Numbered from the stretch's first letter, positions 19,871 to 62,344 are shown. The stretch is 64,000 nt of DNA from Epithemia pelagica (GCA_946965045.2 OX337233.1:2418001-2482000), one strand, 5' to 3'. The notes: a model not told the origin generated them from the sequence alone. Made by a program: numbers and translations.

Positions 19871-22800
19871 TTACAAGAATCGTCGTGTCCCGCGTTCAAC
19901 GGCCCATGTCAAGAGTGTGTCGAGCACCATGAGTCCGAAAATCAATCCGGATAATCCCGTCTGTTGTAGTACCACATTCCGGAGAAGCAGCAACCACCCG
20001 GTTCCATCCATTTCCCCAGGAGTAGTAGTAACAGCCATCCAAGGACGGTCGTCGTCGTCGTGTCCCGTCGTCTCGGCCAGTGTCGTCAATTGCATCAACT
20101 CATTCAGGGGTGGAACTAGTTGGAGGGCGCAACTGGTCAAGACGGCACCACACACTTGCAAACTGCGGTACAGCCAGGTATTGTGCTGTAGCTCTTGGAC
20201 AAAGGGACGACCTTGATAATTGACCCAAAAGGTATTCACCGTGGCCACACACGTGAGCAAAAAGGTGCAGGTATTCAAGACATTGGGATTAAAGGGACCA
20301 TCGGGAACCAAGGAAGGATCGTAGGGATCGACAAACAAACTACAAGCGTGCGTGGCTAGCCAGGTCGTCCCGGCATGGACCAAGAATTGCAAGGCAATGG
20401 AGGTCAATGCCTGGACACTCAACACGGACGATGGTGGTCGTTCCACCGACAAGGTGGGCAAGGGTTCTCCGCGAGTCACCAAGAAAAACAAGCTAGCCAC
20501 GACCATGCCCAAAATGGTCAATTGTCGATCGCCCTGTTTGACTCCGTGCAAAAACAAAGTGCTCAACACCATGGCATTGACCAAACAATTAATGCCCAAA
20601 ATTTTGTAAATCTGAAGCATGGTGACCAAGGTACAACGACCTTGTTGAATCACATCCTTGACGCATTGGATACTCACGGCTCGGGAGGTAAAGGGTGCCG
20701 CCACCGAGGCGTCTCCCAATTCCACCTGATCCAACTCTTGTTGAGCCTCTCGAAGCTGTTCCAACGAGCGCTGCAGGAGTTCGCGTTGTTCCTCTTTTTG
20801 GGGCAGGGTCGTGGAATCACCCTTGGCTTTCTTCTTCTTCTTCTTGTGTTTCGTTTTGGCGCGCGACAAGGTATCCGATGCCTCGCGTTGTTTGGCTTCC
20901 ACGTGGGGGGCACTAAGGATGGAAATACCCACGTGGGCACGTTTCAAGGCTCCCACATCGTTGGTCCCATCACCCACCATGAGGGTTCGAGAACCTCCAT
21001 GATTAAACGCGGCAATGACGGCTTCTTTTTGATGGGGGGCATGTCGGGCAAAGACGGACAAGAGGGGAACCAATTCACTCAAAAGGTCTTGCACGCAAGG
21101 ATGTAGCAAGAGTGCTTTCTCCATGGTCATGGACAACAAGTCCGTTGAAGGAGGAGAAGATCCCAGGACGGATTGCGCCAGTTGAATCAACACATCCCCC
21201 GAAATACTAAAGGCCGCAATTCCGTCGTGTCGCAGTCGTAGGAGCTTGGGAATCTCCTGGCGAGAAAATGGGAGGCGTTCATGGGATTCTCTCGATAGAG
21301 TCACGCATTCAAATTCCAATCGTCGTTGGTGGCTCCTCCGGTTGAATTGCTCCTTCTCGATTGTAGGACTGTGGGGTGACGGTGGTCGCTGTTGAATCTG
21401 GTACACAACCACCTGGTTATTATTAGTACTATTGGTGGTGGTGAACGGGTTGGAGGAGGGCACAATACCCACTTGACGAGCAACCTCCACCGCTGCTCGC
21501 GCCGAATAATAAAAAGAAGAAAGCAAAGTGAGTGTCGGTCCACCATTTTACTAGGAATGATGTTCCAGGAGTAAAAACCATAGAATTACCTGTCAATAGC
21601 GCATCTCCCGTGATCATGACACAATTGTGTTTTGACTTGATCAATTCGGAAATGACCGATTTGGAATCGGGCTTTAAAGGACAATCCAGGACCAGGAATC
21701 CCACAAACTCCAGGTTTCGTTCCACATGTTCCCGACCCTTTTGGACCAGTTGCGGAATAGAAGCGGGGCTGGATGATATCCCAAGCCGTCGAGAGGCCAT
21801 GGCCAGGACGCGTCGTCCGTGAGCCATGTGATGAAAGGCAATCGAGTCATAATTGTCGGGTATCGATTCCGTGGTCAAAAATTCCTTCATGGTTTCGGGG
21901 GCACCTTTGCTCAACGCCCACACACTGTGTTGTCCTTCTTCGGAAGCCAGGACCGTCATGCGTTTGAGTTTGGACGAAAAGGCAAATCGATGGAGAATGG
22001 TCACAGGTTTGCCACCATCATCCGCTGATATAGGAGCTACAACATTGCCTCCGAGTAAACAATACCCTGTCTTGTTCAGCACTGCCTGTTCCAATGGATC
22101 TCCCACAACTACCTGCTTGATCTTGCTGGTCGAACTTGACACTCGACGAGGTCTACCCGTAGGGGTCAGCGAATGGCAAGCAATCATGACACGAATCGTC
22201 TCACGCGGAATACCATCATCTTCCAAGGGTAGTTTGAGCAATGATTCTTCTGTCTGGTCGTTCTCGGTGCTGGGTAAACGGACTCCACGCAAGCGCATCT
22301 CATCACTCGTCAAGGTTCCCGTCTTATCAAAGCAACACACGTTCACTTCCCCTGCCCAGGGTATACGAAAGAGCTCCGAGCAATAGACTTTGCATCGGCG
22401 CACAAGCGCTGCTACACTGTTTGTGACGGCCAAACTGAGTTCCATGGGCAGTTCCGGTGGAACAACGGACGTGACAATGATAATGACATGGAGAAAGAGT
22501 TTGAAGCGATTCCGACGTTCGTCGTACCAGCCCTCCTTCAATACCATGGCTGCCGCTGCCAGTGCACAACAGACCAAAAGAAGAATAAAGACAAACGTGT
22601 CCCATGTATGAATGCTATCTGCCGTACGACTGGAATGTGCCATGGTACGCAACAAATTTCCTTGTGCGGTTTCAAATCCAGTCCGCAGAACCATTCCAGT
22701 CACCCCCCGAGCACCCGGCGGTGGCAAGTCTTCTTCTTCATTACTGGTAGAATCTGCCTCGTTTGCAGTGGCGACGAGAAGCTTCGTGCCACCAAACAAA

Positions 22801-24206
22801 ATGGATTCCTTGTGCAGATTGTCCTGTAGATCTAAACGTTTGGGACCGTTGTCGCCACCGCTTTCCGAAGAATCGGACGTGTCCAATGCTTGTTTCAACT
22901 GGGGTACCGACTCTCCGGTCAGAAGAGCTTCATCACAGACAGCTGAACCTCGGAGAACCACTATATCGGCAGGGACGGGCGTCCCTTCTACGGACCCCAC
23001 CGAAATCGAGACATAATCTCCTGGAACAAGTTCCGTTTTGGGTAAGAGTGTCCAACCATTACTTCGTTTCAATCCTACTGAGATTGACCGCCGAACCCAC
23101 ACTCTTTGGCCAGCGTTCGTATTTCCGGCATGATGCAGTCGTTGTAACGATTGCTGTCTATTGTACGCCAATGTTGACTCAAACATGAGCAATGCACAGA
23201 GAGTGAAGATTGCATAGTACCAATATTCGTCCAGTGACCACAGCAAGACACAGAAAACTTGAAACAGGAAGAAAGGGGCAATAAGTTGTTCCGAGAGCAG
23301 TTCCCAAAAAGATGGAAGTTGTATTAACGTTTCGTTGAGACCGTAGATTGATGAGGCTTTGGTTACATGGTCTATTGATGGATGACCATTCCAACAGGAA
23401 TAAAACTTTAAAGGAAGATTGATCGGGAAAAAGAGAGGACGGAACTTGCTTTGCGACTCATCTTCGACTTTCGTCCTTGTGATTGAGGGTGCGTTCTCAT
23501 CAGCATTCCACAGTGCAATATCCCCATCGGGAAGAAACTTGCGAGGACAATATCTAAATATGTGATCCTGAAAGTTCACATAAGCCCGTTTATCCCTTGT
23601 ATGTTGTACAGCTGCGATCCCACAACGCTCCCCACCACCTGAAGACGACATGGTCGATCGAATAGGCTCAACAAAACAATGCGTCCAGTTTAGTATCTCC
23701 TCTGAATTGAACTCATGTTCATCATTCTTGTCGCGTGTATATCGGTCCTTTTTTCGCCCAACAACACGAAAACCCACTGCAACTTTCAAGCAGACACTCC
23801 ACTGAGCTCCAATAACCAACATTACCTGACAAACAAGAGTCAATGCAAAAGCAGCCGTGACTACACTTTGAGCCATCGCAATATCCTGCTTCGTGATCTT
23901 GCCGGTATCAAGAAGCGCAGTTGCGTTGGTTGCCAGCAAATGATCCGAAAGTACAAAGAAGAAACTTAAGAGGGCAAAAGGACCCACATCGAGACGTCTG
24001 AACGGATCCACTTGAATCAAAGGTGTCAACCGAAAGGTCGAAGTGCTTTCCGGGTCATGATCTTGATCGGCTCTGGTAGTGGACCCTGATCGCTCTTCGA
24101 TGTGGGGTTCCTCGACTAGTGTTTGGGTATCTTCATGGTTCTCCTCGTTTGCTGCAGCTGAAGCAGAAGTGGCCTTAGCTTTGCGGTTTCGCAGGGACGG
24201 TCCCAT
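19871..24206 (-). CDS. ATP13A1: P5A-type P-ATPase (ATP13A1/Spf1 orthologue), 2 exons
   Basis: DEALLTGESVP, PPELPMELS (P5A signature), DKTGTLT phosphorylation site, MITGD, MVGDGTNDVGALK; intron 21589-21493. Confidence 0.93.
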
Positions 24207-24379
24207 GAACCCATACACAGCAATCGAGATCGAGAGTACACAGATGCCTTTGTTGTTGTCCACTGGCGATTGGCGATATGCGTCGGAATGTTGTTTTGTG
24301 TGTAACCGATGGAGAGTAAGGTTACCAATCAACCGTCTGTACTTCGTGCGCGCCCGTCGATAACCCGGTAGTCATCATG

Positions 24380-24500
24380 TACCCCCTAGCAGAGGTGAGT
24401 ACAAGTCGCACATGTGTCGTGTTTTTTGGTTATGAGATACGAAACACGCAAAATAAATCGACTCAAGTGCGACTATAAATCTCGCCCCTACTTGGGGGTA
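24380..24500. mobile_element. 121-bp non-autonomous MITE with AcademH-type TIRs
   Basis: Left end TACCCCCTAGCAGAGGTGAGTACAAGTCGCAC; right end (reverse complement) TACCCCCAAGTAGGGGCGAGATTTATAGTCGCAC. Both align to the termini of 53120-60884. Degenerate 10-bp TSD: agtcatcatg (24370-24379) / agtcaccatg (24508-24517). Confidence 0.75.
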
Positions 24501-41615: not shown

Positions 41616-43028
41616 ATGGCTACGAGTGTGAAATCGATTTCACACAGCCGTAGTCTTCCCCCAAGGGTCATTCATTTGCTTCCAACAACCAAACAAATAA
41701 GCATGATCTATTCAAAGTACCTAGAGGCAGAGGCAATGGAAGAAGAAAGTGACGAAGAAGACTTCCTCCACTTACTCAAGCTGATAGAATTTTATTCCCT
41801 TGCCAAGAAGCACCGAAGAAGCAGAAGCCCAATCCCTCGGTCCCAAACTCCTAAGGTTGAACGACTCAAGTGGTCGACCTTTGTGAGAGCCCAAATGGCA
41901 AGCGACCCAAAAGACTTTGAGAAGAGCATCAGAATGCCTTTAGAGGCTTTTGAAGCTCTTCATGAAATTCTTAAAGAGTCTCTGAACAAAAATGAAGAAA
42001 TGGGGGCTTTACGTGGTGGTGCAATCGCTTGGGAATTACGACTGTACTTGACAGTCCGATACCTTGGTGGTGGTGCAATGCATGACATTCGACGGATTTT
42101 TGATATAAAAAGGTCCACCTCCTACCATATAGTCCGCGACGTCTGCCGAGCCATACTCCAGTGTGATAAGTTGGGGTTTAGCTTCCCAAGAACAGAGGAG
42201 GATTGCCAAAAGGCTGCCCTTGGTTTTCGAAGCATCTCTTTCGATGAAGCAATCATCAACTGCGTTGCTGTTGTCGATGGATATTTACTTCACATTGAAC
42301 AACCTAGCAAGAGAATTGCAGGCAATCAACGTCAATATTATTCCGGTCACTACAAAAAATTTGGGATCAACGTACAAGCCGCGTGTGATCATAATTCACA
42401 ATTTACCTACTTTGCTCTTGCTGGACCTGGTAGCCAAAATGACAAGGTGGCCATTGACCAATGCTCATTGGGTCCCTTAATTGACACTTTACCCGAAGGA
42501 TATTGTGCTATTGGTGATGCCGCATATTATCCTACCGAACGGTTGGCACCTATCTACTATGGCGTCAACCGGGACGACCCTCTACACGACAACTTCAACT
42601 TTTTTGCCTCTCAGCTGCGAATCAGAATTGAGATGGCGTTTGGTCTCATGCAGATGAAATGGAGATTCCTACAGCAGGCACGCCAACCAACAAAGAATCT
42701 TCCTATGTATGTAATGGCCATAGCCCGGTTGCACAACTATGTTGTTAAGTACCGGTTGGAGCAAGGCAGCACACTTACTGAAATGATGAATGAAGATCAC
42801 GGACAAGATGGTGAGAGTGGACAAACACCCGTACTACCATCACAACCCGTGGATGATAATGGCAACCCTATGCTCTACGATGATATGGGCAATGTCGTAC
42901 GAAGGCCCTTGCCCAAGGGGCATTCCATGACAAGGCATTCGATGGCTGTTCGGATCCAGCAGAAAAACCTAGTCCGTCCTCTGCGCAACACCATTCAACG
43001 CGATGCCGAAGATCAAGAAGATGAATAG
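41616..43028 (+). CDS. PIF/Harbinger DDE transposase (HARBI1-like)
   Basis: AVVDGYLLHI (D), HYKKFGINVQAACD, GPGSQND, AIGDAAY (D), QLRIRIEMAFGLMQMKWRFL (E), LHNY. Confidence 0.92.
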   Translation: MATSVKSISHSRSLPPRVIHLLPTTKQISMIYSKYLEAEAMEEESDEEDFLHLLKLIEFYSLAKKHRRSRSPIPRSQTPKVERLKWSTFVRAQMASDPKDFEKSIRMPLEAFEALHEILKESLNKNEEMGALRGGAIAWELRLYLTVRYLGGGAMHDIRRIFDIKRSTSYHIVRDVCRAILQCDKLGFSFPRTEEDCQKAALGFRSISFDEAIINCVAVVDGYLLHIEQPSKRIAGNQRQYYSGHYKKFGINVQAACDHNSQFTYFALAGPGSQNDKVAIDQCSLGPLIDTLPEGYCAIGDAAYYPTERLAPIYYGVNRDDPLHDNFNFFASQLRIRIEMAFGLMQMKWRFLQQARQPTKNLPMYVMAIARLHNYVVKYRLEQGSTLTEMMNEDHGQDGESGQTPVLPSQPVDDNGNPMLYDDMGNVVRRPLPKGHSMTRHSMAVRIQQKNLVRPLRNTIQRDAEDQEDE

Positions 43029-51510: not shown

Positions 51511-52935
51511 TTACCCTACCAACCTCCATGACTGCAGGGCATTTTGATAATTCCAAAGGAGACATTTCTCCAAAATCTCAGCAGCTTCCACTTCGTACAA
51601 GTTAGCAGAATTTGACCAGCATTCACTAAGGTCGTCGACACCAGGAATGGCTGTCACAAGGATAGTGTCCCCGTCCTCAGACTCCTCCGTTACGAGAGTA
51701 TTTTTGTTATTCTTGGGATAGAATATTTGAACATCAGCCCCCGATATCGTCCACCGATCGTTTGGGTATTTGTAGAGAGCCGCGCCTTTTTCAAGCTTGT
51801 TTAAAATAGCCTCTGCAATTTCATTCCTGTTAAATACCAACTCCAATGGGATAATGTAGTAATGGCATTCGTCAATGATACAGGTGGAAAATTCAGTGTT
51901 GGCATTTCGCAAAGGCCTAATCGCAAAGGACTGCACTGTTTTCCGTCGCTTTCCTCTTCCCCGTCCAGTTCCATCAAAGTTCAGATGGACATCTCTACTC
52001 AACGCAAGGCGGTTGAAGTCGGGTGTATCAAGCCATTCATACACTCCGTGACATTTGGCACTGGGGAAGATGTGAGCTGATTCCGCCTCAGCCAACGTGA
52101 AAGAAGCACTGTTCTCAATCCGTTGAAATCGAAAAGTGGTGTCTTTTCTTGATAGAAGGGTGACATCCATTGTGAAGTCGCTTGATCGAGTATCCAATAT
52201 CATGTCTACAAGAGGCGAACCCGGTTCCGCTTCTCCATTTCGTGGTTCGTAGTGAGTCTTTAGAACCATGTTTTCGACTGTCACTGGAAAGGGGTCAATT
52301 TCTGATAAGGTCAAGTCCCGCACGATGTTCTGTTGGTCGTCCACCAGCTGTAAATCCCCGTTGTTGCGAAGAATATAAGCCTTCAAGTTGTCCACAAAAT
52401 AGCCAGCCCGAAAAACCTTGCTAAACACCACAGAAAACTTAATGATCGAACGATTGAACGGGTCACTATCACTCGCCTCTGTGACAAAAGCCGTATTTGC
52501 ATCTAGATCTGGTGGATATAATCCTTTAAGAGAAGACGCCAATTTGAACAGCTCGTAACGGGCACCAGCGTGGGTTTTTGGTCGAGATATTGCCCCGGAG
52601 ACCTTGCGCCAGCGACTTGGTTGTTGCGAAAGCGGTTCTTGCTGCACGATCGCTGGTGCAACCACAATCAATGGCTTTCTGCTTGCTTTATCGGTGGGAA
52701 CAACATCCCTGGGATCTATGCAGTGGTTGTTGAGAATAGGCACATCAGTTCCCGTCGGGTAGACGTCAAGTTGATAATAAGCGCAGTGATTCAGCGCCAA
52801 TTGCGCTGTTTCCTTCACTTCACGTTTCAGATCATCGACATCATCTCCCGCGAAATCTTTGATTTTAAACAATTTCGGATCTTGATCCTCCTTGCCGATA
52901 TAAAGCTTGATCCAAATGCTCGTCATTGTCGTCAT
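51511..52935 (-). CDS. Crinkler (CRN)-type effector: Ubl-like N-terminal header + C-terminal HNH-type nuclease domain
   Basis: Header IWIKLY...FKIK..DDVDDLKREVK...LDVYP..T...IDP...VP...RKPLIVVAP; C-terminal ESAHIFP...FNRLALSRDVHLNFDG (HNH_2-like). Confidence 0.75.
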   Translation of the reverse strand: MTTMTSIWIKLYIGKEDQDPKLFKIKDFAGDDVDDLKREVKETAQLALNHCAYYQLDVYPTGTDVPILNNHCIDPRDVVPTDKASRKPLIVVAPAIVQQEPLSQQPSRWRKVSGAISRPKTHAGARYELFKLASSLKGLYPPDLDANTAFVTEASDSDPFNRSIIKFSVVFSKVFRAGYFVDNLKAYILRNNGDLQLVDDQQNIVRDLTLSEIDPFPVTVENMVLKTHYEPRNGEAEPGSPLVDMILDTRSSDFTMDVTLLSRKDTTFRFQRIENSASFTLAEAESAHIFPSAKCHGVYEWLDTPDFNRLALSRDVHLNFDGTGRGRGKRRKTVQSFAIRPLRNANTEFSTCIIDECHYYIIPLELVFNRNEIAEAILNKLEKGAALYKYPNDRWTISGADVQIFYPKNNKNTLVTEESEDGDTILVTAIPGVDDLSECWSNSANLYEVEAAEILEKCLLWNYQNALQSWRLVG

Positions 52936-53297
52936 TGTGATGAAGGTGGCATGAGAAGTATACCGATTACCGATCCAGAAAAAACCAAACCGCGCGGGCC
53001 GGGCCGCATTTGGTTTTGAAAAATTTTTCAGCTATACCTAGCAAAGTAGCTACCTAGTCAAGAAGCGCGCAAACAATCAAAATACGAGTAACAGTAGGGT
53101 AAAGAGTAGAGCGTAACCCTACCCCCAAGCGCCGGGTGAGTTATGAATCCCGCCTGAGTCGGAGAAAATGTGCATTCGTCTTCTCACCCCCACGGCGCGT
53201 CCTCCAAATTTGGCGATTTCTCGATCTTGATACAAAACCATTTTCACCTCCACGGTCTCAACACGGACCCAACCTTGTGTGACCAAGTGCACCAACC

Positions 53298-55477
53298 ATG
53301 GACCCTTCCACCCCAGTCCAAAGCTTTTCCCAGGAAACTAACACCATTGAAGAGCTATCTACGGCGTCGCTGGTGCCTACACCGAACCACTTGGTGTCCA
53401 CAGCCAACGTTCTATCTGCCCTCCGTCACCACAGCAACGAGGCCAGTGAAGCCCATGAAACAAACTCCCAAGACACCTCTATCCGCCCCATCCGACCCGC
53501 TTCCCCTTTTCCTATCAATAACCCTCATGCCTTACCCCTACTGGAGCAGGCCATATTGCTTTCCTTTACCGACTGGCATGGCAAAACAGCAAGGCCATGG
53601 CAAGTGAATGCTTGTGGAGAAGTGATCAAGCGGCACACTCTGCAACCTACCTTCCCTCCCATCCTACGTCCTCTGCTTATTGTTCGCGCCACCGGCGGTG
53701 GGAAGTCCGCTGTAGGAGACGTCGCTGGTTTCCTTTGTGGAGGGATTTCGATCACAATTGTCCCTTTGTTGAGCTTAGCGGCGGATCAGACGTCAAAGTT
53801 GACGCAACTGTCTCTCTCCCAAACCCTCCATCATCGCCTTCAAGTGTTCAACCTTGATGTAATCCGGTCTAAGAAGCTGAATACTGTTCTCCGCAACCAT
53901 CTTGAGCAAATGACAAACACAGATGCATCGAAAAAACGCGTCTTCTTGTTCTCCTCCCCACAAAAAATAACCAGCAACCCACAATGGCAGGAAACATTAT
54001 CGCGCTGTTGCGACAATGATCACTACGCTTGCTTGCGATCGACGAATGCCATCTCTATGCTAGCCATGGGATGGAGTTCAGAGCCGAATTTGGAGAGCTA
54101 CGCAAGTGTTTATTCAAAACGCTTACACGACAATCAAAAATCCCCATACCAGTGCTCTTCATGACAGCTACGGCCTCGCCTGCAATGGTTGACGACTTGC
54201 AAACGCTGACTGGATTGCGGTTTGATGTCAAGGAAGACCTGATATGGCCGCATCGACATTCTGGCGTGCATCGTCGTAACATTTTTCTCGACATATCGTT
54301 CAAGGATACTGCCCTTCGACGGATCAAGGCCGAACTTGTCAACACATGCAAATCCACAACCACCCACAAGTTGATTGTTTATTCCAACTCTCGGAAGGCA
54401 ATCCAGAACCTATACCACAAGTGTCGCGCGGAGCTCAATCGACTTGGAATCCAGAAAGACATACTCATGGTACACGGCACAATGTTTAGGGAACAAAAGT
54501 TCCACCACACGGACCTCTTTGTTGGGAAGCCATTGTTGGACGAGTCTCCTACGACGGGACGCACATTGCGCTTTGACCCTATTGCGCTGTTTGCCACTGC
54601 CGGAACTGCGAGTTCCGGCATTGACTGTGCGGATGTCCATAAAGTCATCTTCCATGGAATACCTACGAGCCTCCAGGACCTACTCCAATGTTCTGGCCGA
54701 TGTGGACGGAGTCCATTGGCTACTGCTTCCAATTCATCGTTTACCATCGTCTTCTCTTTAAACAGTCTCGTGTCCCTAATGACACGAATCTTCATCATAC
54801 CTAAATATGAAGAGATGCAACGGAACAAGACATCAAACACAAGTGGAACCAACAACGACGAAGAGAACAACAGTCTCAATTCCAAGCCAGCTGCTGACAA
54901 CTCCCTATCCTCCGAAGCACTCGCCACACGCCATTGGAATTATCTGTTGCCTGTTCTATCTCTGTTATGCTTGAACAACGGCCGCTGCATCCACTATCAA
55001 GTAGAGCAGGCAATGCTCCATCCATATCATGAGAAGGTCTGTGGTATGGCCATGTCATGCAATGGTGCATGTTGGCGGTGTACCCCACATCCTGTGTCAA
55101 CTCCTTTGGATGGTAGAGTCGACAGAGTTGTCTTGCAAGACTACTTTGTCCAGATATTTATCACACGAAAACTTTCACCAGCTCAACTCTCCCTTCACAA
55201 GGAATGCTTTCTCAACGGACTGCTGCAGTACGAAACAATTGGGCCCGATGGGAAAGGAATCAAAGTCTTTGCCAAAAGGGTATTCAGATTGAAGGATAAG
55301 CGAGCCGCCCGACAACGTGCCAAAGCCTTACTTCTGAAATGTTTTGCCTCGGAAATCCTAGAGCCAGATGTTGACGGTTTAAACCTCCGAGTGAAACTCG
55401 GTTATTATGCAAATGGAAACACCAGGATGAACTGTGACGGCGTTTGGTCTGGCTTCAACCTCTTCCCAACTACATAG
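53298..55477 (+). CDS. RecQ-like SF2 helicase of the AcademH element (single -1 frameshift at ~54017)
   Basis: RPWQ, ATGGGKS (motif I), IVPLLSLAADQ (Ia), AIDECH (II), FMTAT (III), SSGID (V), QCSGRCGR (VI). Adding one G at gacaatg^atca gives DNGSLRLLAIDECH. Confidence 0.85.
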
Positions 55478-55506
55478 TCTTTAATGTAAAGCTCTTCTAA
55501 ATAATA

Positions 55507-58500
55507 TTAGTTAACCGAATTCTTGAAACGTTCCAAAGCATCCAACGACCGATCGAGCATACTGTTGTCGCTGTTGTTGCCTGACATTGCATCCATCCAT
55601 CCCAAACTCTCTCGATCGTCCTCCATTTCTTCCAACCTCATATAAAGCTTGTACCGTAAAAAGTGATCCTCCCTCTCCTTTCGTTCTGCGTCTTTTGCTT
55701 TTGCCATGATAACATTTTTTTCCGCGATCGCTTCAAGAGCAAGTGCAACAACATCTTGTGACGCTGTTGCATTCATAGAGACAACCTTCATCCCTTTCAA
55801 AGACGCTTTTTCTCTCAGACCATCCGTATTCTTGTTTGTCACACTGTCCGAGGTTTCTCCCTCCTCGTTCCCTTCCTGAGATGCACAATCCTCATCCTCC
55901 TCTTCATCGCGTTGAGATGGACTATCGTCACCATCCAGCCTATCATCCATCAATTCAGCAGCCTCTTCCTCAATGATATCCTCAATTTGGGTCTCATTTA
56001 TCTCCTGTTCATCATCAGCTTGCAAATTGCCTTCCCGGTTATTCTCACATTCTTCCTCGTTCTCTCCACCTTCTTCGTTGTTGTCGGCGTCCTCTTCATT
56101 ATCTGACACCATCTCCACACTCGGCTGGGTTCCAAAAAGTGTTGTCTCGTCAATCACATCCACAACAACAGTTTCTTCGCCCTCACTGAAGTACGACCTA
56201 TCACCGACTGACTTCTCCCCGTCCTCTTCTTTCATGGCATCTTCGAGGTTAATTTCCTCATCCTCATCGTCCTTATCCACATCCATTGCATCTGCTTCTT
56301 CACGATCAATGGCTTCTTCGTCTACACTACGATCTTTGGCTTTGGAGAGAGGTCCCATCATTGCCTGTGCCTGGCATAACACATACTGATGTGTTGTGTC
56401 GGCCTCTGCCTTACCGTCGCCACCACAGCGTCGAAGCTTCTTCTGTACCTTCAATGTGACCATGTCCAATGCTCGCCAGAAATGGTCTCCATCCATAACA
56501 CGAGAACTGCCGCGAGGAACCTCGTGGCACTTCGTAAGGACAAGCAATTCCGTAACCAATACACGATTCAGTCGACTTCTCGGGTAAGTTGTTTTTTTGT
56601 TACGTTTGCCCGGATCAGCAACTTTTTCCTCATCCTGGCCTTGGCTGCCGTCTTCTCTCAATCGTTCCGCAAGTTCCGACTGGCCATCGGCACGACCACA
56701 AGTATAGAATTCCACAAAATGCTTGGCCCTTTGACAGGCCGTAAGCATTTGGGAAACTTTAATGAACAACGCTTCGGTTCCAAGATGGTTCATGCCCTTG
56801 AAAAAGGGCATGAGCCTTTCCATAATTTGGTCCAGCGCGCTTTCCTTTTGGAATACGGAAGGCACACTTCCAGCCCTTTGGCGTTTAGTCCTATTCAACC
56901 TGAGTTGTTGCAGGATTGAAATAGGTATGCCATGGTAGTACACGTCCATAAGGCGGATCTGTGTGTTGAAAGAATTGCGCTTCTTGGTGATATAGAAATA
57001 GGGCAGGTAATCTACCACCATGGCTTCCATAGCGATTGCATCACCGTGTTGCTCAGCCTCCAGGAATCGCATGTATTTCTTCGTCACCAACAGAAAGTTA
57101 CAGAGATAGCGCCGTAGCCAGTATGCACTTTCTCTAACTTCACGACTTAAGAAAGCCAAGTATGTTTTGGCTATGTGGACTGCCAGAGCTTCTGCACCGT
57201 TGTCTCCTTGTAATATATCATGAAGCTTTTCGGACTTGATACATTCGGAAATGAAGACATCCAGCATCAGCCGTTCTAACTCTTCATAAACTAGTGCAAC
57301 CAGTCGATGGCATAATCTGTAGCTGTTAGAAACGTCAACAGGGTCGAGTCGTTTCCACTTCAGCCTATGCTGGAAGCACTGAAGGAACCCACCGTAGAAG
57401 AGCCTGTAGATTGATTCTAACATATGGAATCGAACGTGGAGATCCCCCGTTATTGGAACAACTCTGTGGATGACCGTTGCTAGCGTAATGGCTTGTCGAT
57501 AGGCCTGCCTGAATGAAACCGTCTTTGAATCTGTTATAGCCATAACATCGTCAAAAAACTGAAAGATTCTGTCAATTGACAGACCGTCACCAACTACAAA
57601 TAGCCATTTCTTCTGCCATGATGCACCGGGTTTGTAAATATTGCTATTCTCATCCCAATCCAAAAGACCGTGAAGGGTCATAAAGTCAAGGACAACACCA
57701 GTTGCACCGACCTTTGTCGTCTCGTCAAGCACCGACACTGGTAACATTAATAATTCCGCGACAGGTGGAATGTGTCGCCAAGTCCGAACAACTCTAGACG
57801 GAAACTGGCGCGCCATGGTGAAGACATTCGTGTCACGGTTCTTCCGGAGTCTGTTCATGGTAGCACTGACAATGGCTCGTCGCGGACAGGTTGCAAATTG
57901 AACAGGCTGAAGGGTATAATCAACGTCGTGGCCAGCATGTCGTCGGATGGATAAGCAACGTTTTATCGTACGCAATTCTGCACACCAAGAGACCATTTGC
58001 ACGTAGCAACGGACACGGGTACCGGAACAATCGAAGGGGTTCCCATCGCGTTCAAGGTCCGACTTGTACGTGCCACGGAAAACAGAAGCTATGCTGTCAA
58101 CCAAAGACGCGTCGGTGTTCCGATCGCATTCAAAAGCCGGCATCTGGTACGGTGCCGGAATATCCTGTTGGAGGTATGTCAGAATTGGTCGAGCATGAAA
58201 GGAGTAGACCCATGATGGCATCTTTTCAAGGTACATGGCCATCACAAAACGGGCTGTAACTCTGGTGTAGATTGCACTCTGGCCAAATTGGAAAGATAGT
58301 CGCCTGCCATCTTGGAGGTTGTCAAAAACACATAGCAGATTGGTGACATTTCTTATGGATCGTTTGACTTTGTCGTCGTAGGAGCGAAGACATTCAGCAA
58401 CACGTCGTTCCATCGTCCTCTTCGAGACTGCTATTCCAAACCAGATTGGAATCTGGGTAGCCAGCATTCCGTGGCCACAAGCATATTGTGCCAAGGCAAA

Positions 58501-60711
58501 AATCATGCCGAACGGAACCAATAAATGGTTATTGTGTTTCCGAGCTCGTATCACAAATTGGAACAATGCATCGAGAGTGTATCGTTTCCGGAGGAAGCGT
58601 TTATGTTTCGATGGTGCGTCGTCTATCTTTTTCGTGTAGCCACTTATCCCCATGATAGCGTTGAATTGTTGAGGACATTGTTTTTCAAATTGTGTGGCCA
58701 ATTCGCGTAGCTCGTACTCGGAAAGAAATTTGTCGAAAATATTGTTGAATCGGCCAAAACAGTCATCCAAACGTTCGTTCAACCTTTCATCTAGGACTCG
58801 GCAAAACTTAGCTGCAACTTCGGACTCAATGATGGGGGGGAACACCAACGGTTGAGAGGCGGCTTTGTTCCTTTCTGCTGAAAGCTTTTCTTCGTACTCG
58901 GATTTTGTTGTCACTGCGTCCTGTTGGCTTTGGCATCGTTCCCAGACACTCTTTAAGTCTGCCATCATAAAGCGATCCCCTGGACTTTCTTGTATAATAC
59001 GATGGAATAATGTCAGGCGATCATCTCCCTTGGCTTTGAATTCTTTGAAGATAGTCAACCAACTCCGTTCGGGATGATAGTCAGCCTGAATGAAAACACC
59101 TTGTGGGTAGGTGTACAATTCAAACCAAGAGATCAGCTTCTGGATACAATCTTGCGGTGGAAAGGCTATATTGCAATTGATGGCGGAGAAAACAGGAAAC
59201 CGGAGGTATATGCCATTGTGATTGAACTCGGACATGGCTTCCCGAACTTGGTCGTAGGTTTTCACGCCCTCCTCAGTAATTTTCTTCTTTGTTGCTTGAT
59301 TGGTATGGACCCACCCAGTCAGTTGCTTATATCGTCGTCCCTGCAAAGATACAGCTGGTAAGAATTCGGACTGGAACGTTTCCCGCCAAAGAGTCAGCAA
59401 GCGCTTTCCGTAACGTGGAGGAAGGACTTCTTCGTCAAAAAACAATACCACCGGTGTTTCCTCCTTGATAAACCAGATATCCTCGATTAGTAAAGTACGC
59501 AATGCAAAGGATGTTACGACATGAATTTGATTGTTTTGTTGGTTTGCTGAGTTAGGCGAGGTGGTTTCATCTTCAATAGATTCGCCTCGCTTCCTTTTGT
59601 TGCTGGATTGTCGGTTGTAACGTCGCTGTTTATTCTTACCGGTGGTGGACCGAGAAACACCCGCGGTGAAGTTCTTGGCTTTTCGCATCAGTTGCGAACA
59701 ATGGTTTGAGACTAAGGACAGAGCTTGGGGGTTTTCAGCTGAAGGAGCAACAATAACCAAAGGTGGATGGAGCTTAGTCGATTGGCCGGGATTAAGGCAA
59801 GGGAGGGGTGGATGCCGACGTAGAGGAACGAGATATGTCCCTTCCGAAATTGCTTTTACCTTCACTTTCAAATTTGGGTATTGGGCTTGGGCTTGTGTAC
59901 CACGGGCACGTCCTTGCAGCAACGGTACTGACGGTCGGGCGGTGGACGTTGTGTTACTGTCGGCAGAAGGTTCGGAAGGAGGGGCAACAGCAGTAGCAAC
60001 AGTGTACGCAGTTACAAGGTCATTGTTGGGGTCGTTCGTTGAGGTTGGATTGTTGTTATTGTTGTTTGTTGTCGTAGTAGGAACATTAATGTGTGGGTGG
60101 TTGTTGTTTGGATGTTCCTCCTCAACCACTTGTGAGATATTCAATGCTTTGGCGGGCGACGATTGAGTTCCAAACTCGACTTGTCCCAAAGAGTGACGAC
60201 GGTGTAGAAGGTGGAAGGACAGGGAAGATGCACCTCTGTTGCTTGTTGGTTGGGCGCTGGAACCAACAGTAGAGGTAGGCCCACCTGGAGTAGCTTGGGA
60301 CGGCAGAGAATTGTAGGTGAATTGAAGTCGATGGGGCGCTGGTTGGGTGCGCTCTGACGGTATTGTTGATAAAGAACTTGCAGCGGCACTGTCAAGGAAG
60401 CCTGAGGGTTCCGACGCTTCTTCGTTTGGTTCGAGTTGACCTTGTGCTGTGGTATTCCTCGATAAAGGGGTTGCGTAGAAAGGAAGAGACGAGGTGGTGA
60501 CTTGGACCGATGAAGGAAATGGAAACGGATTGGATGGAGAAGGGGCCGGAGGATTCGGCTCTTGTGAAGATACGTTCCGAGTTTTGGCGATGCTGTTGTT
60601 TCTGCCTTCTTGCGTTGACGCTCGGGACGCTTCGGATGCTTCTTGCGCCGCGAAAGCCTCTCGGGCTTGCTTCTGAGAGAGACGGTGTTTTCGGTGGGAG
60701 GATGTTGACAT
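55507..60711 (-). CDS. Academ-type DDE transposase (DUF6589-like), 1734 aa
   Basis: LCVFDNLQ (D), VLDETTKVGATGVV, VVGDGLS (D), TGDLHVRFH, HGD, ALDQIMERL (E). Low-complexity N-terminus, acidic C-terminus, ORF intact. Confidence 0.78.
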   Translation of the reverse strand: MSTSSHRKHRLSQKQAREAFAAQEASEASRASTQEGRNNSIAKTRNVSSQEPNPPAPSPSNPFPFPSSVQVTTSSLPFYATPLSRNTTAQGQLEPNEEASEPSGFLDSAAASSLSTIPSERTQPAPHRLQFTYNSLPSQATPGGPTSTVGSSAQPTSNRGASSLSFHLLHRRHSLGQVEFGTQSSPAKALNISQVVEEEHPNNNHPHINVPTTTTNNNNNNPTSTNDPNNDLVTAYTVATAVAPPSEPSADSNTTSTARPSVPLLQGRARGTQAQAQYPNLKVKVKAISEGTYLVPLRRHPPLPCLNPGQSTKLHPPLVIVAPSAENPQALSLVSNHCSQLMRKAKNFTAGVSRSTTGKNKQRRYNRQSSNKRKRGESIEDETTSPNSANQQNNQIHVVTSFALRTLLIEDIWFIKEETPVVLFFDEEVLPPRYGKRLLTLWRETFQSEFLPAVSLQGRRYKQLTGWVHTNQATKKKITEEGVKTYDQVREAMSEFNHNGIYLRFPVFSAINCNIAFPPQDCIQKLISWFELYTYPQGVFIQADYHPERSWLTIFKEFKAKGDDRLTLFHRIIQESPGDRFMMADLKSVWERCQSQQDAVTTKSEYEEKLSAERNKAASQPLVFPPIIESEVAAKFCRVLDERLNERLDDCFGRFNNIFDKFLSEYELRELATQFEKQCPQQFNAIMGISGYTKKIDDAPSKHKRFLRKRYTLDALFQFVIRARKHNNHLLVPFGMIFALAQYACGHGMLATQIPIWFGIAVSKRTMERRVAECLRSYDDKVKRSIRNVTNLLCVFDNLQDGRRLSFQFGQSAIYTRVTARFVMAMYLEKMPSWVYSFHARPILTYLQQDIPAPYQMPAFECDRNTDASLVDSIASVFRGTYKSDLERDGNPFDCSGTRVRCYVQMVSWCAELRTIKRCLSIRRHAGHDVDYTLQPVQFATCPRRAIVSATMNRLRKNRDTNVFTMARQFPSRVVRTWRHIPPVAELLMLPVSVLDETTKVGATGVVLDFMTLHGLLDWDENSNIYKPGASWQKKWLFVVGDGLSIDRIFQFFDDVMAITDSKTVSFRQAYRQAITLATVIHRVVPITGDLHVRFHMLESIYRLFYGGFLQCFQHRLKWKRLDPVDVSNSYRLCHRLVALVYEELERLMLDVFISECIKSEKLHDILQGDNGAEALAVHIAKTYLAFLSREVRESAYWLRRYLCNFLLVTKKYMRFLEAEQHGDAIAMEAMVVDYLPYFYITKKRNSFNTQIRLMDVYYHGIPISILQQLRLNRTKRQRAGSVPSVFQKESALDQIMERLMPFFKGMNHLGTEALFIKVSQMLTACQRAKHFVEFYTCGRADGQSELAERLREDGSQGQDEEKVADPGKRNKKTTYPRSRLNRVLVTELLVLTKCHEVPRGSSRVMDGDHFWRALDMVTLKVQKKLRRCGGDGKAEADTTHQYVLCQAQAMMGPLSKAKDRSVDEEAIDREEADAMDVDKDDEDEEINLEDAMKEEDGEKSVGDRSYFSEGEETVVVDVIDETTLFGTQPSVEMVSDNEEDADNNEEGGENEEECENNREGNLQADDEQEINETQIEDIIEEEAAELMDDRLDGDDSPSQRDEEEDEDCASQEGNEEGETSDSVTNKNTDGLREKASLKGMKVVSMNATASQDVVALALEAIAEKNVIMAKAKDAERKEREDHFLRYKLYMRLEEMEDDRESLGWMDAMSGNNSDNSMLDRSLDALERFKNSVN

Positions 60712-60891
60712 TGAGAAGGTCGTTCACAGACACCTTACCTCTACCACCGTGATGAATGTGTGGAGGTAATATGTGTGTTTTGGGATTTTGTATCAAGATC
60801 GAGAGCTCCAGGACGCGCCGTGGGGGTGAGTATACGAAAGCCCTTTTTAAGTGCGACTCAATACTCGCCCGGCGCTTGGGGGTAAGCGTAA

Positions 60892-62295
60892 CCCTCGGTA
60901 TCAGTGTCCACTGCTTAGCTGTTTTTTGTCTGTGCCACCTTCATAGGTTCCCAAGTGGACACAGACAGAAAATTTCCTTTTTGACGCAAATGGAAATGAC
61001 TAAATTGCAAATTGGCACGCATACCCAGCTGGAGTTTTCACAGTTCATGAAACTGACGCATGCCCAGCAAGCGGCCCTGCGTGGATGACGGTTGCAGAAT
61101 GCGCCATCCAAATTCCAAATCCCCCATAAAATCACACAGAGGCCATCACCCACAGTGGCATGGCATGAATTGTCGCCTTTCATGCAGTTGAGGTAAGTTT
61201 GAACGTACAAAAATGTCTCCATGACAACAACAGCTCTTGAACTGTCATTCTAACTTCTCCCTCACACTTGTATTCGTTTTTCTCTTCTGATATTCAACAT
61301 TCGACAACTGTCTCTCTCTCTCTGTCCGCTTCATTGAGAGTGAATGTTTGTGCCTATGGAATGTCAATTCTCCATTCGAGCCTCGGCTTAAAATTGGAGA
61401 CCACATAGAGCTTCTTTCTTTGTATACTACTCCTAGGAGTTTCTATCAGAAGTTTATTTCTAATCTTTCATTGATTTTGTAAGATCGTGCGTGTTATTGC
61501 CGTGCTTTCAACCACCATGACACTCTGGTGAAGGTTTGGGGCCATCTTGAAGCAACTGATCGACTCTGTGATCTACGAAGACTAGTTTGAGTAGGCCTAG
61601 TGGCAACAAGCTGCCTTAGTTTGTTGTCATCTCTAGGTCTATGTACTTGAGTATCCGACACACAAAGAAAGGTTCTTGATCTGTGATCGACATGGAGATG
61701 GACTAGGCGAAGCACAATGATGAGAGTAAAAATCCATGCTACAAAGATAAGAACACAACCAACAATCAAGGAGCACTACGATTAGAGCAAGGAAAAGTTG
61801 TGGCAAACGGCCTACAATGACTTGTCCTCCGTTTGATTGCGACAAAATCAAAGGAGCACCAACCATCAGCATTAACAGGGACAAAGATTAATGAGATAAC
61901 GTGTGAGAAAACTACGCAGGACATGAAAAAAGCTAAGAGACAAACAACAAGCAACAAGAGAGAAAAACCAACCAAAATACTGCTTCAGGTCGCAAGGATT
62001 CATAAAGAGCTCGCTTCATGATCAATGTCGAATGTCGATGCTTTTGACACCGCGTGAGATTTTTGTGACGAGACAAGAGTCGTGTGAAAGGATTCCAAAT
62101 TTGAATCGTGGTCACGGTCACAGGAAGATGCTAACCGCCAACTGTCACTTGCACGCCGGCATTTCCACCAGCACGAGGAACTACATTGGTGAAAAGGACA
62201 GACAAAAAGTGAAATTTTCTGTCTGTGTCCACTTGGGAACCTATGAAGCTGGCACAGACAAAAAACAGCTAAGCAGAGGACACTGATACCGAGGG
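60892..62295. mobile_element. Non-autonomous piggyBac-like element (1.4 kb)
   Basis: ~85-bp TIRs CCCTCGGTATCAGTGTCC...CACAGACAGAAAATTTC with 2 mismatches; flanks GTAA (60888-60891) and TTAA (62296-62299); no transposase ORF. Confidence 0.8.
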
Positions 62296-62344
62296 TTAAA
62301 ACCGGAAATCAAAAATTGAACATGGAAATTAACGCCATTCGTAA

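Follow-up and report, generated by a model that had tools for sequence, protein, structure and literature searches.

To our knowledge Academ is among the least studied of the eukaryotic DNA transposon superfamilies, and we know of nobody who can say why one of its lineages needs a helicase of its own. AcademH was reportedly described from animals (Kojima in 2020, Mobile DNA 11:15, going by the title), and the abstract of that work is said to describe an animal form with a PHD finger. One published account separates AcademH, which has 9-10-bp target-site duplications (TSDs) and a helicase, from AcademX, which has 3-4-bp TSDs and a nuclease (PMC10045372), and another places AcademH in Basidiomycota, Ascomycota and Mucoromycota (PMC10799480). 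Here we describe a complete element of ~7.8 kb with TA...TA termini, at 53120-60884 of a 64,000-nucleotide stretch of the Epithemia pelagica genome (GCA_946965045.2 OX337233.1:2418001-2482000; hereafter the window), whose host is a raphid pennate diatom (a stramenopile) outside the reported AcademH range of animals and fungi. The element is almost certainly a DDE transposon with an obligate RecQ-like helicase, and we regard it as a likely member of AcademH, assigned by the published descriptions and not by alignment or a tree with curated Academ sequences. As such it extends the host range of AcademH to a diatom and is not a new kind of element.

With AcademH as so described the element shares a DDE transposase and a separate superfamily 2 (SF2), RecQ-like helicase carried within the element, terminal inverted repeats (TIRs), a 10-bp TSD that lies within the published 9-10 bp, a modest copy number (dozens at most) spread over several subfamilies, and relatives in Basidiomycota, Mucoromycota, Cnidaria and Chordata. 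It differs in its diatom host, in the convergent arrangement of its genes, whose stop codons lie 19-29 bp apart in four loci, and in a helicase that is frameshifted in the window copy. AcademX, presumed to belong to the same transposase superfamily, departs from it in having 3-4-bp TSDs and an XPG nuclease with no helicase (PMC10045372); no XPG domain was found in the window element or in the seven long relatives scanned.

The mobility of the element is evident from its copies. The window is identical (100%) to ENA ERZ21939226 ctg1284l over the 21.4 kb compared, and apparently shares its assembly with two loci, L002 and L003, that hold sister copies. The copy at L002 is 99.07% identical across the whole element, sits at an unrelated locus and is flanked by an exact 10-bp TSD of its own (AATTTCTCGG); the copy at L003 is 75.6% identical, has the same termini and is likewise flanked by an exact 10-bp TSD (TGGAGCTCTC). 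Exact TSDs were read in these two copies and in the window, the ends of two others (L004 and L011) being unclear or cut by the contig, and two further insertions are seen among read contigs (Logan, four runs of the same organism) that lose homology exactly at 53119/53120. Three copies with common termini and different exact 10-bp TSDs establish that this is a transposon, and are what the original prediction led one to expect of further copies.

The same prediction had described TIRs of ~22 bp with one mismatch and an exact 10-bp TSD at this locus, and all of these are present (Table 1). The TIR pattern, TACCCCCAAGCGCCGGG[T/C]GAGT, matches twice in the window against none expected from 100 shuffles. 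Inward of the TIRs a gapped inverted similarity extends ~125 bp from the element ends, with subterminal motifs that include CTCACCCCCA(C/T)GGCGCGTCCT and CTCGAT(C/G)TTGATACAAAA. Over the terminal ~125 bp the window and L003 subfamilies are near-identical despite their 75.6% overall identity, which fits conserved cis sites and possible cross-mobilisation.

The larger gene is an uninterrupted open reading frame (ORF) in which all four of the D/D/H/E motifs ascribed to it are found, so that the intact 1734-aa transposase which had been claimed is indeed there. At E ≤ 0.1 the sole Pfam match is DUF6589 (PF20231; 30.2 bits, cutoff 27), as had been expected, with no KDZ, Plavaka, MULE, Transposase_mut, hAT or P match; the grouping with KDZ or Plavaka that had been named as counter-evidence was not seen. 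A profile of nine sequences retrieved 883 proteins at E ≤ 0.001 from 1.84 billion representatives, and a word-indexed search with a profile of 47 transposase sequences returned copies from the same assembly only. From a 47-sequence alignment of transposase cores we obtained an AlphaFold model (AF2) of residues 640-1420 (predicted local distance difference test 88.4, predicted template-modelling score 0.88), a stretch that contains an RNase H-like DDE core and an alpha-helical insertion domain of ~200 residues ahead of the helix bearing E1298. A wide structural search with this model gave 25 PDB chains at Z ≥ 5, the majority being DDE transposases, integrases or further proteins with an RNase H fold, headed by Hermes (7.8), the P element (7.1) and Tn5 (7.1) and including retroviral integrases, ISCth4, RAG1 and Sleeping Beauty; the alignments span from strand beta-1 to the helix with E1298. 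A profile search against PDB sequences yielded only spurious tubulin matches to the acidic tail. The putative catalytic residues and H1092 are invariant among the homologues that cover each column (Table 1), and D1090 varies. The large protein is an RNase H-like DDE transposase of the DUF6589 family. Judged by predicted structure and by language-model similarity, its closest neighbours are DUF6589 proteins from Basidiomycota, Cnidaria, Mucoromycota and Chordata, among them a PHD-finger protein and a C2H2 protein.

The second gene converges on the first, and both its RecQ-type family and its position agree with what had been proposed, as does the distance of 29 bp measured between the two stop codons; it is not, however, a single gene in this copy, being divided between two frames by a 1-bp deletion that is seen by comparison with the sister copy at L002. 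The N-terminal part is 83% identical in amino acid sequence to residues 1-240 of the intact L003 helicase. An element variant in the Logan contigs carries the G at 54017, but these contigs neither bridge the window junction nor carry the private variants of the window copy, and because they come from other copies or haplotypes they neither verify nor refute the deletion. As expected, RecQ family models are the best match for the intact L003 helicase and for the two window pieces (TIGR00614, E 4e-23), and against the PDB human RECQ1, BLM and WRN are best, down to E 2e-11. Because the L003 helicase scores 81.9 bits with TIGR00614, far under the curated cutoff of 219.8, and only DEAD and Helicase_C are found in Pfam, with no RecQ_Zn_bind, RQC or HRDC match in that scan, we use the label 'RecQ-like' for what its sequence indicates is an SF2 helicase and not a canonical RecQ. 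With the cellular RecQs (RECQ1, BLM, WRN and bacterial RecQ) it has in common motifs I, II (DExH), III and VI (GRxGR) and a Cys-rich region after the core; it differs from them in falling far below the family cutoffs, in being encoded by a transposon and in being co-inherited with it. In L003 the convergent stops lie 27 bp apart, in L001 23 bp and in L005 19 bp. Two predicted mRNAs with stops 19-29 bp apart must either have overlapping 3′ ends or use one terminator in both directions, which could yield antisense or double-stranded RNA.

A maximum-likelihood tree built from the 47 cores unites all eight sequences from this genome in a single clade (support 100/100), comprising at least four subfamilies, and places a JGI metagenome contig, L001, as sister to it. 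We chose distant transposase homologues from across this tree and examined their genomic context. An SF2 helicase lies beside the transposase or is fused to it in 9/9 lineages sampled. It is convergent with the transposase in the window, L003, L001, L004, L005/6, L011/12 and L015, lies downstream on the same strand in L013/14 (L013:2178-7750), and is fused to the C-terminus of a DUF6589 transposase in L008:7979-13012 (P0149, 1677 aa); gene order and orientation thus vary across lineages while the pairing is kept. One of the more distant of these relatives, L005:9636-16998 (the same locus as L006), combines transposase P0161 with a convergent helicase of 806 aa between perfect 25-nt TIRs starting CACACTG. 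Three separate helicase genes of relatives match the diatom helicase over nearly their full length at E 1e-34 to 2e-55, and the fused helicase domain of P0149 does so at E 8e-17, so that element-linked helicases are closer to it than are solved RecQs (best 2e-11). In the comparison of the window and L003 subfamilies the transposase has a ratio of nonsynonymous to synonymous substitution (dN/dS) of 0.085 and the helicase one of 0.08-0.19. It follows from the linkage, the mutual similarity of the helicases and the dN/dS values that the helicase has long been part of the element and is kept by selection, rather than having been captured recently.

Several observations weigh against the assignment to AcademH or against parts of the account given here. 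The DUF6589 match is only just over the Pfam cutoff, every PDB Z-score of the transposase model is below 8 and hence middling, and a Foldseek search of the model against the PDB gave nothing significant. No empty allelic site for the window insertion was found among the Logan contigs or by flanking-protein look-ups, exact look-ups of two flanking proteins returning the window's own contig only, and the helicase of the window copy is frameshifted. The TSD of the L005/L006 relative is 8 bp long (ACTTACTC), short of the published 9-10 bp; the wider family may not be uniform in this respect. Lastly, the equation of DUF6589 with Academ rests on architecture, TSD length and the taxa of the relatives, and not on a direct alignment or tree. 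We found no link between DUF6589 and Academ in the literature, and no DUF6589, PF20231 or Academ entry in the supplements of PMC10799480. The 8-bp TSD, the indirect footing of that equation and the missing literature link, together with the fact that the top 150 relatives are mostly of metagenomic or protist-like origin and only 20-40% identical, leave some room for a separate DUF6589 superfamily, or a deep branch parallel to Academ, that paired with a helicase independently. We think this unlikely, since the fold and feature neighbours of the transposase are DUF6589 proteins from phyla in which AcademH is reported, namely Basidiomycota and Mucoromycota (PMC10799480) as well as animals, with the PHD-finger animal form among them, and since a helicase together with a 10-bp TSD is the AcademH signature as published (PMC10045372).

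Other known transposons combine some of the same features. RecQ-bearing lineages exist within Kolobok (KolobokH in fungi and Kolobok-1_CCri in a red alga, the latter encoding its helicase on the complementary strand), and a diatom, Fragilariopsis, is among the known Kolobok hosts (PMC9587614), so that a helicase-carrying DDE transposon of that superfamily might be supposed here; but Kolobok elements have a TTAA-specific 4-bp TSD and 5'-RR...YY-3' termini (PMC9587614) and a different transposase family, whereas our three copies have 10-bp TSDs, no TTAA flanking their ends and TA...TA termini, and the transposase matches DUF6589 only. The TSDs and termini exclude Kolobok for practical purposes, and we give it next to no weight. 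Hardly more probable is a Mutator-like (MuDR/MULE) or hAT- or P-like element that captured a host RecQ gene. TIRs with 9-10-bp TSDs are typical of MuDR, Hermes, the P element and ISCth4 (IS256-type) are among the nearest solved folds, and the Atlas neighbours of the transposase include bacterial Mutator-family and IS66 transposases (template-modelling score ~0.5), amounting to an RNase H-like core and a partial similarity of fold. None of these families, however, gives a sequence-profile match or has an obligate helicase partner, whereas here the helicase accompanies the transposase in every lineage sampled, down to ~20% identity, and the element helicases resemble one another more than they do cellular RecQs. 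Least credible of all is that the two ORFs represent host genes, ordinary or domesticated, lying between coincidental repeats. Public gene calls do list the pair as normal genes bearing DUF6589 and Helicase_C, just as the original prediction had supposed that annotation would, but copies of the entire 7.8-kb unit sit at other loci with 99% and 76% identity; they have its termini, each is flanked by an exact 10-bp duplication of its own, and different disabling indels are present among the copies. The host-gene reading is rejected because of these copies at multiple loci. In the public calls the transposase also begins at an internal ATG (giving 1314 aa at the window locus, L009/L010, and 1558 aa at L003, behind which lie open ORFs of 1734 and 1754 aa respectively), so that database entries for this family often lack their N-terminal part.

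Membership of AcademH remains the reading that we prefer. It had been suggested that the element represents an unreported stramenopile lineage of AcademH; the diatom host and the AcademH features are as proposed, and we found no Academ or AcademH record from a diatom or other stramenopile in the literature, but Repbase or Dfam entries may exist, and to that extent the novelty is qualified.

The recent activity that had also been proposed is supported for the family but less so for the window copy, which with its frameshifted helicase is probably non-autonomous for that function. The 99.07% identity of its sister, its exact TSD and its near-perfect TIRs indicate that the window copy was recently inserted. 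The two close copies bear different disabling indels, the 1-bp deletion in the window copy as opposed to the loss of 10 bp in the helicase and one extra A in the transposase of L002. In L003 both ORFs are intact (1754 aa for the transposase and 729 aa for the helicase), and judging by these this copy looks autonomous.

We infer the following course of transposition. The transposase would recognise the 22-nt TIRs with their terminal TA together with the conserved motifs of the adjoining ~100 bp, the element would be excised and then integrated at target cuts staggered by 10 bp, and gap repair would give rise to the 10-bp duplication. The RecQ-like SF2 helicase of the convergent gene would be a working part of this machinery, because purifying selection acts on it and it has accompanied the transposase family since the deepest splits sampled; its probable task is to unwind or remodel the DNA of the element ends, or to act in gap repair at the donor or target site. 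The window copy would be able to move again only with helicase provided in trans, perhaps by a copy like that at L003, in which both genes are intact and the ends are nearly identical to its own.

Table 1. Features of the Epithemia pelagica element; positions are those of the window, and residue counts refer to homologues that cover the column.
Feature	Position	Strand	Remarks
Left TSD	53110-53119		AGCGTAACCC, 10 bp, exact match to 60885-60894
Left TIR	53120-53141	+	22 nt, starts TA; TACCCCCAAGCGCCGGG[T/C]GAGT
Left subterminal conserved motifs	reach ~53245		inward of left TIR
RecQ-like helicase, N-terminal part	53298-54017	+	frame 0; Walker A GGGKS (motif I) at 53694-53708
Frameshift site	54017-54019	+	one G absent after 54017 (GG to G); TGA in downstream frame
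RecQ-like helicase, C-terminal part	54020-55477	+	frame 2; begins just before DExH box LLAIDECH; stop at 55477
Helicase motif II, DECH	54041-54052	+	
Helicase motif III, TATAS	54164-54178	+	
Helicase motif VI, GRCGR	54695-54709	+	followed by Cys-rich C-terminal region
Spacer between convergent stops	55478-55506		29 bp
Transposase	55507-60711	-	ORF of 1734 aa, no interruption; stop codon ends at 55507
E1298, putative catalytic (LDQIMER)	56818-56820	-	helix after insertion domain; E 36/36
H1092, invariant (GDLH)	57436-57438	-	H 47/47
D1042, putative catalytic (VGDGLS)	57586-57588	-	directly after strand beta-4; D 47/47
D797, putative catalytic (VFDNLQ)	58321-58323	-	in strand beta-1 of model; D 38/38
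Right subterminal conserved motifs	begin ~60760		inward of right TIR
Right TIR	60863-60884	-	22 nt, ends TA; 1 mismatch to left TIR
Right TSD	60885-60894		AGCGTAACCC, 10 bp, exact match to 53110-53119

A flanking P5-type ATPase gene (21429-24332, minus strand) has only diatoms among its best named relatives, with Epithemia clementina closest at 65% identity, Nitzschia, Mayamaea and Cylindrotheca at ~45%, and then Odontella and Attheya; a flanking methyltransferase searched against the ESM Atlas did not identify the host. To the left of the insertion the Logan contigs cover the 460 bp at 52631-53088 at about one third of the depth seen in the adjoining flank, and other contigs of that set diverge at 52637 and 52660, indicating that the element lies in a haplotype-specific or structurally variable stretch, which falls inside the 5′ part of an ORF at 51511-52935. 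To the right, a 96-bp inverted repeat pair (60889-60983 and 62203-62298, 96.9% identical, separated by ~1.2 kb) begins within the right TSD, 4 bp in, and it looks as though the transposon inserted right at the margin of a second short TIR element, ~1.4 kb long. Elsewhere in the window there is an ORF with DDE_Tnp_4 (41616-43028), a Harbinger/PIF-type transposase that marks the neighbourhood as transposon-rich, and a 121-bp element at 24380-24500 resembling a miniature inverted-repeat transposable element (MITE), with ends TACCCCC.AG...GAG...AGTCGCAC similar to the termini of this family; its flanks, AGTCATCATG and AGTCACCAGT, match at only 7/10 positions, and an ATG lies just downstream.

The element adds a young AcademH population of several subfamilies in a diatom, and so widens the host range beyond animals and fungi, and it documents a pairing of transposase and helicase that has been conserved over very deep divergence. 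For annotation, it marks pairs of DUF6589 and DEAD/Helicase_C genes in protist genomes as belonging to transposons and not to the host. Candidate live copies are now identified for functional work. A broader possibility, which we put forward tentatively and hold to be somewhat less than an even chance, is that AcademH is ancient and pan-eukaryotic, with deep branches among protists and a helicase that has been obligate since the root, and that the diatom family is currently active. If so, AcademH would not be an animal-fungal group only but would span diatoms and many of the marine eukaryotes represented in metagenomes, and the active family would consist of the apparently autonomous L003 copy, the 99%-identical sister insertions and derived MITEs. 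If, in addition, the species can be cultured, it would offer a first experimental system for the part played by a transposon-encoded RecQ helicase in DDE transposition.

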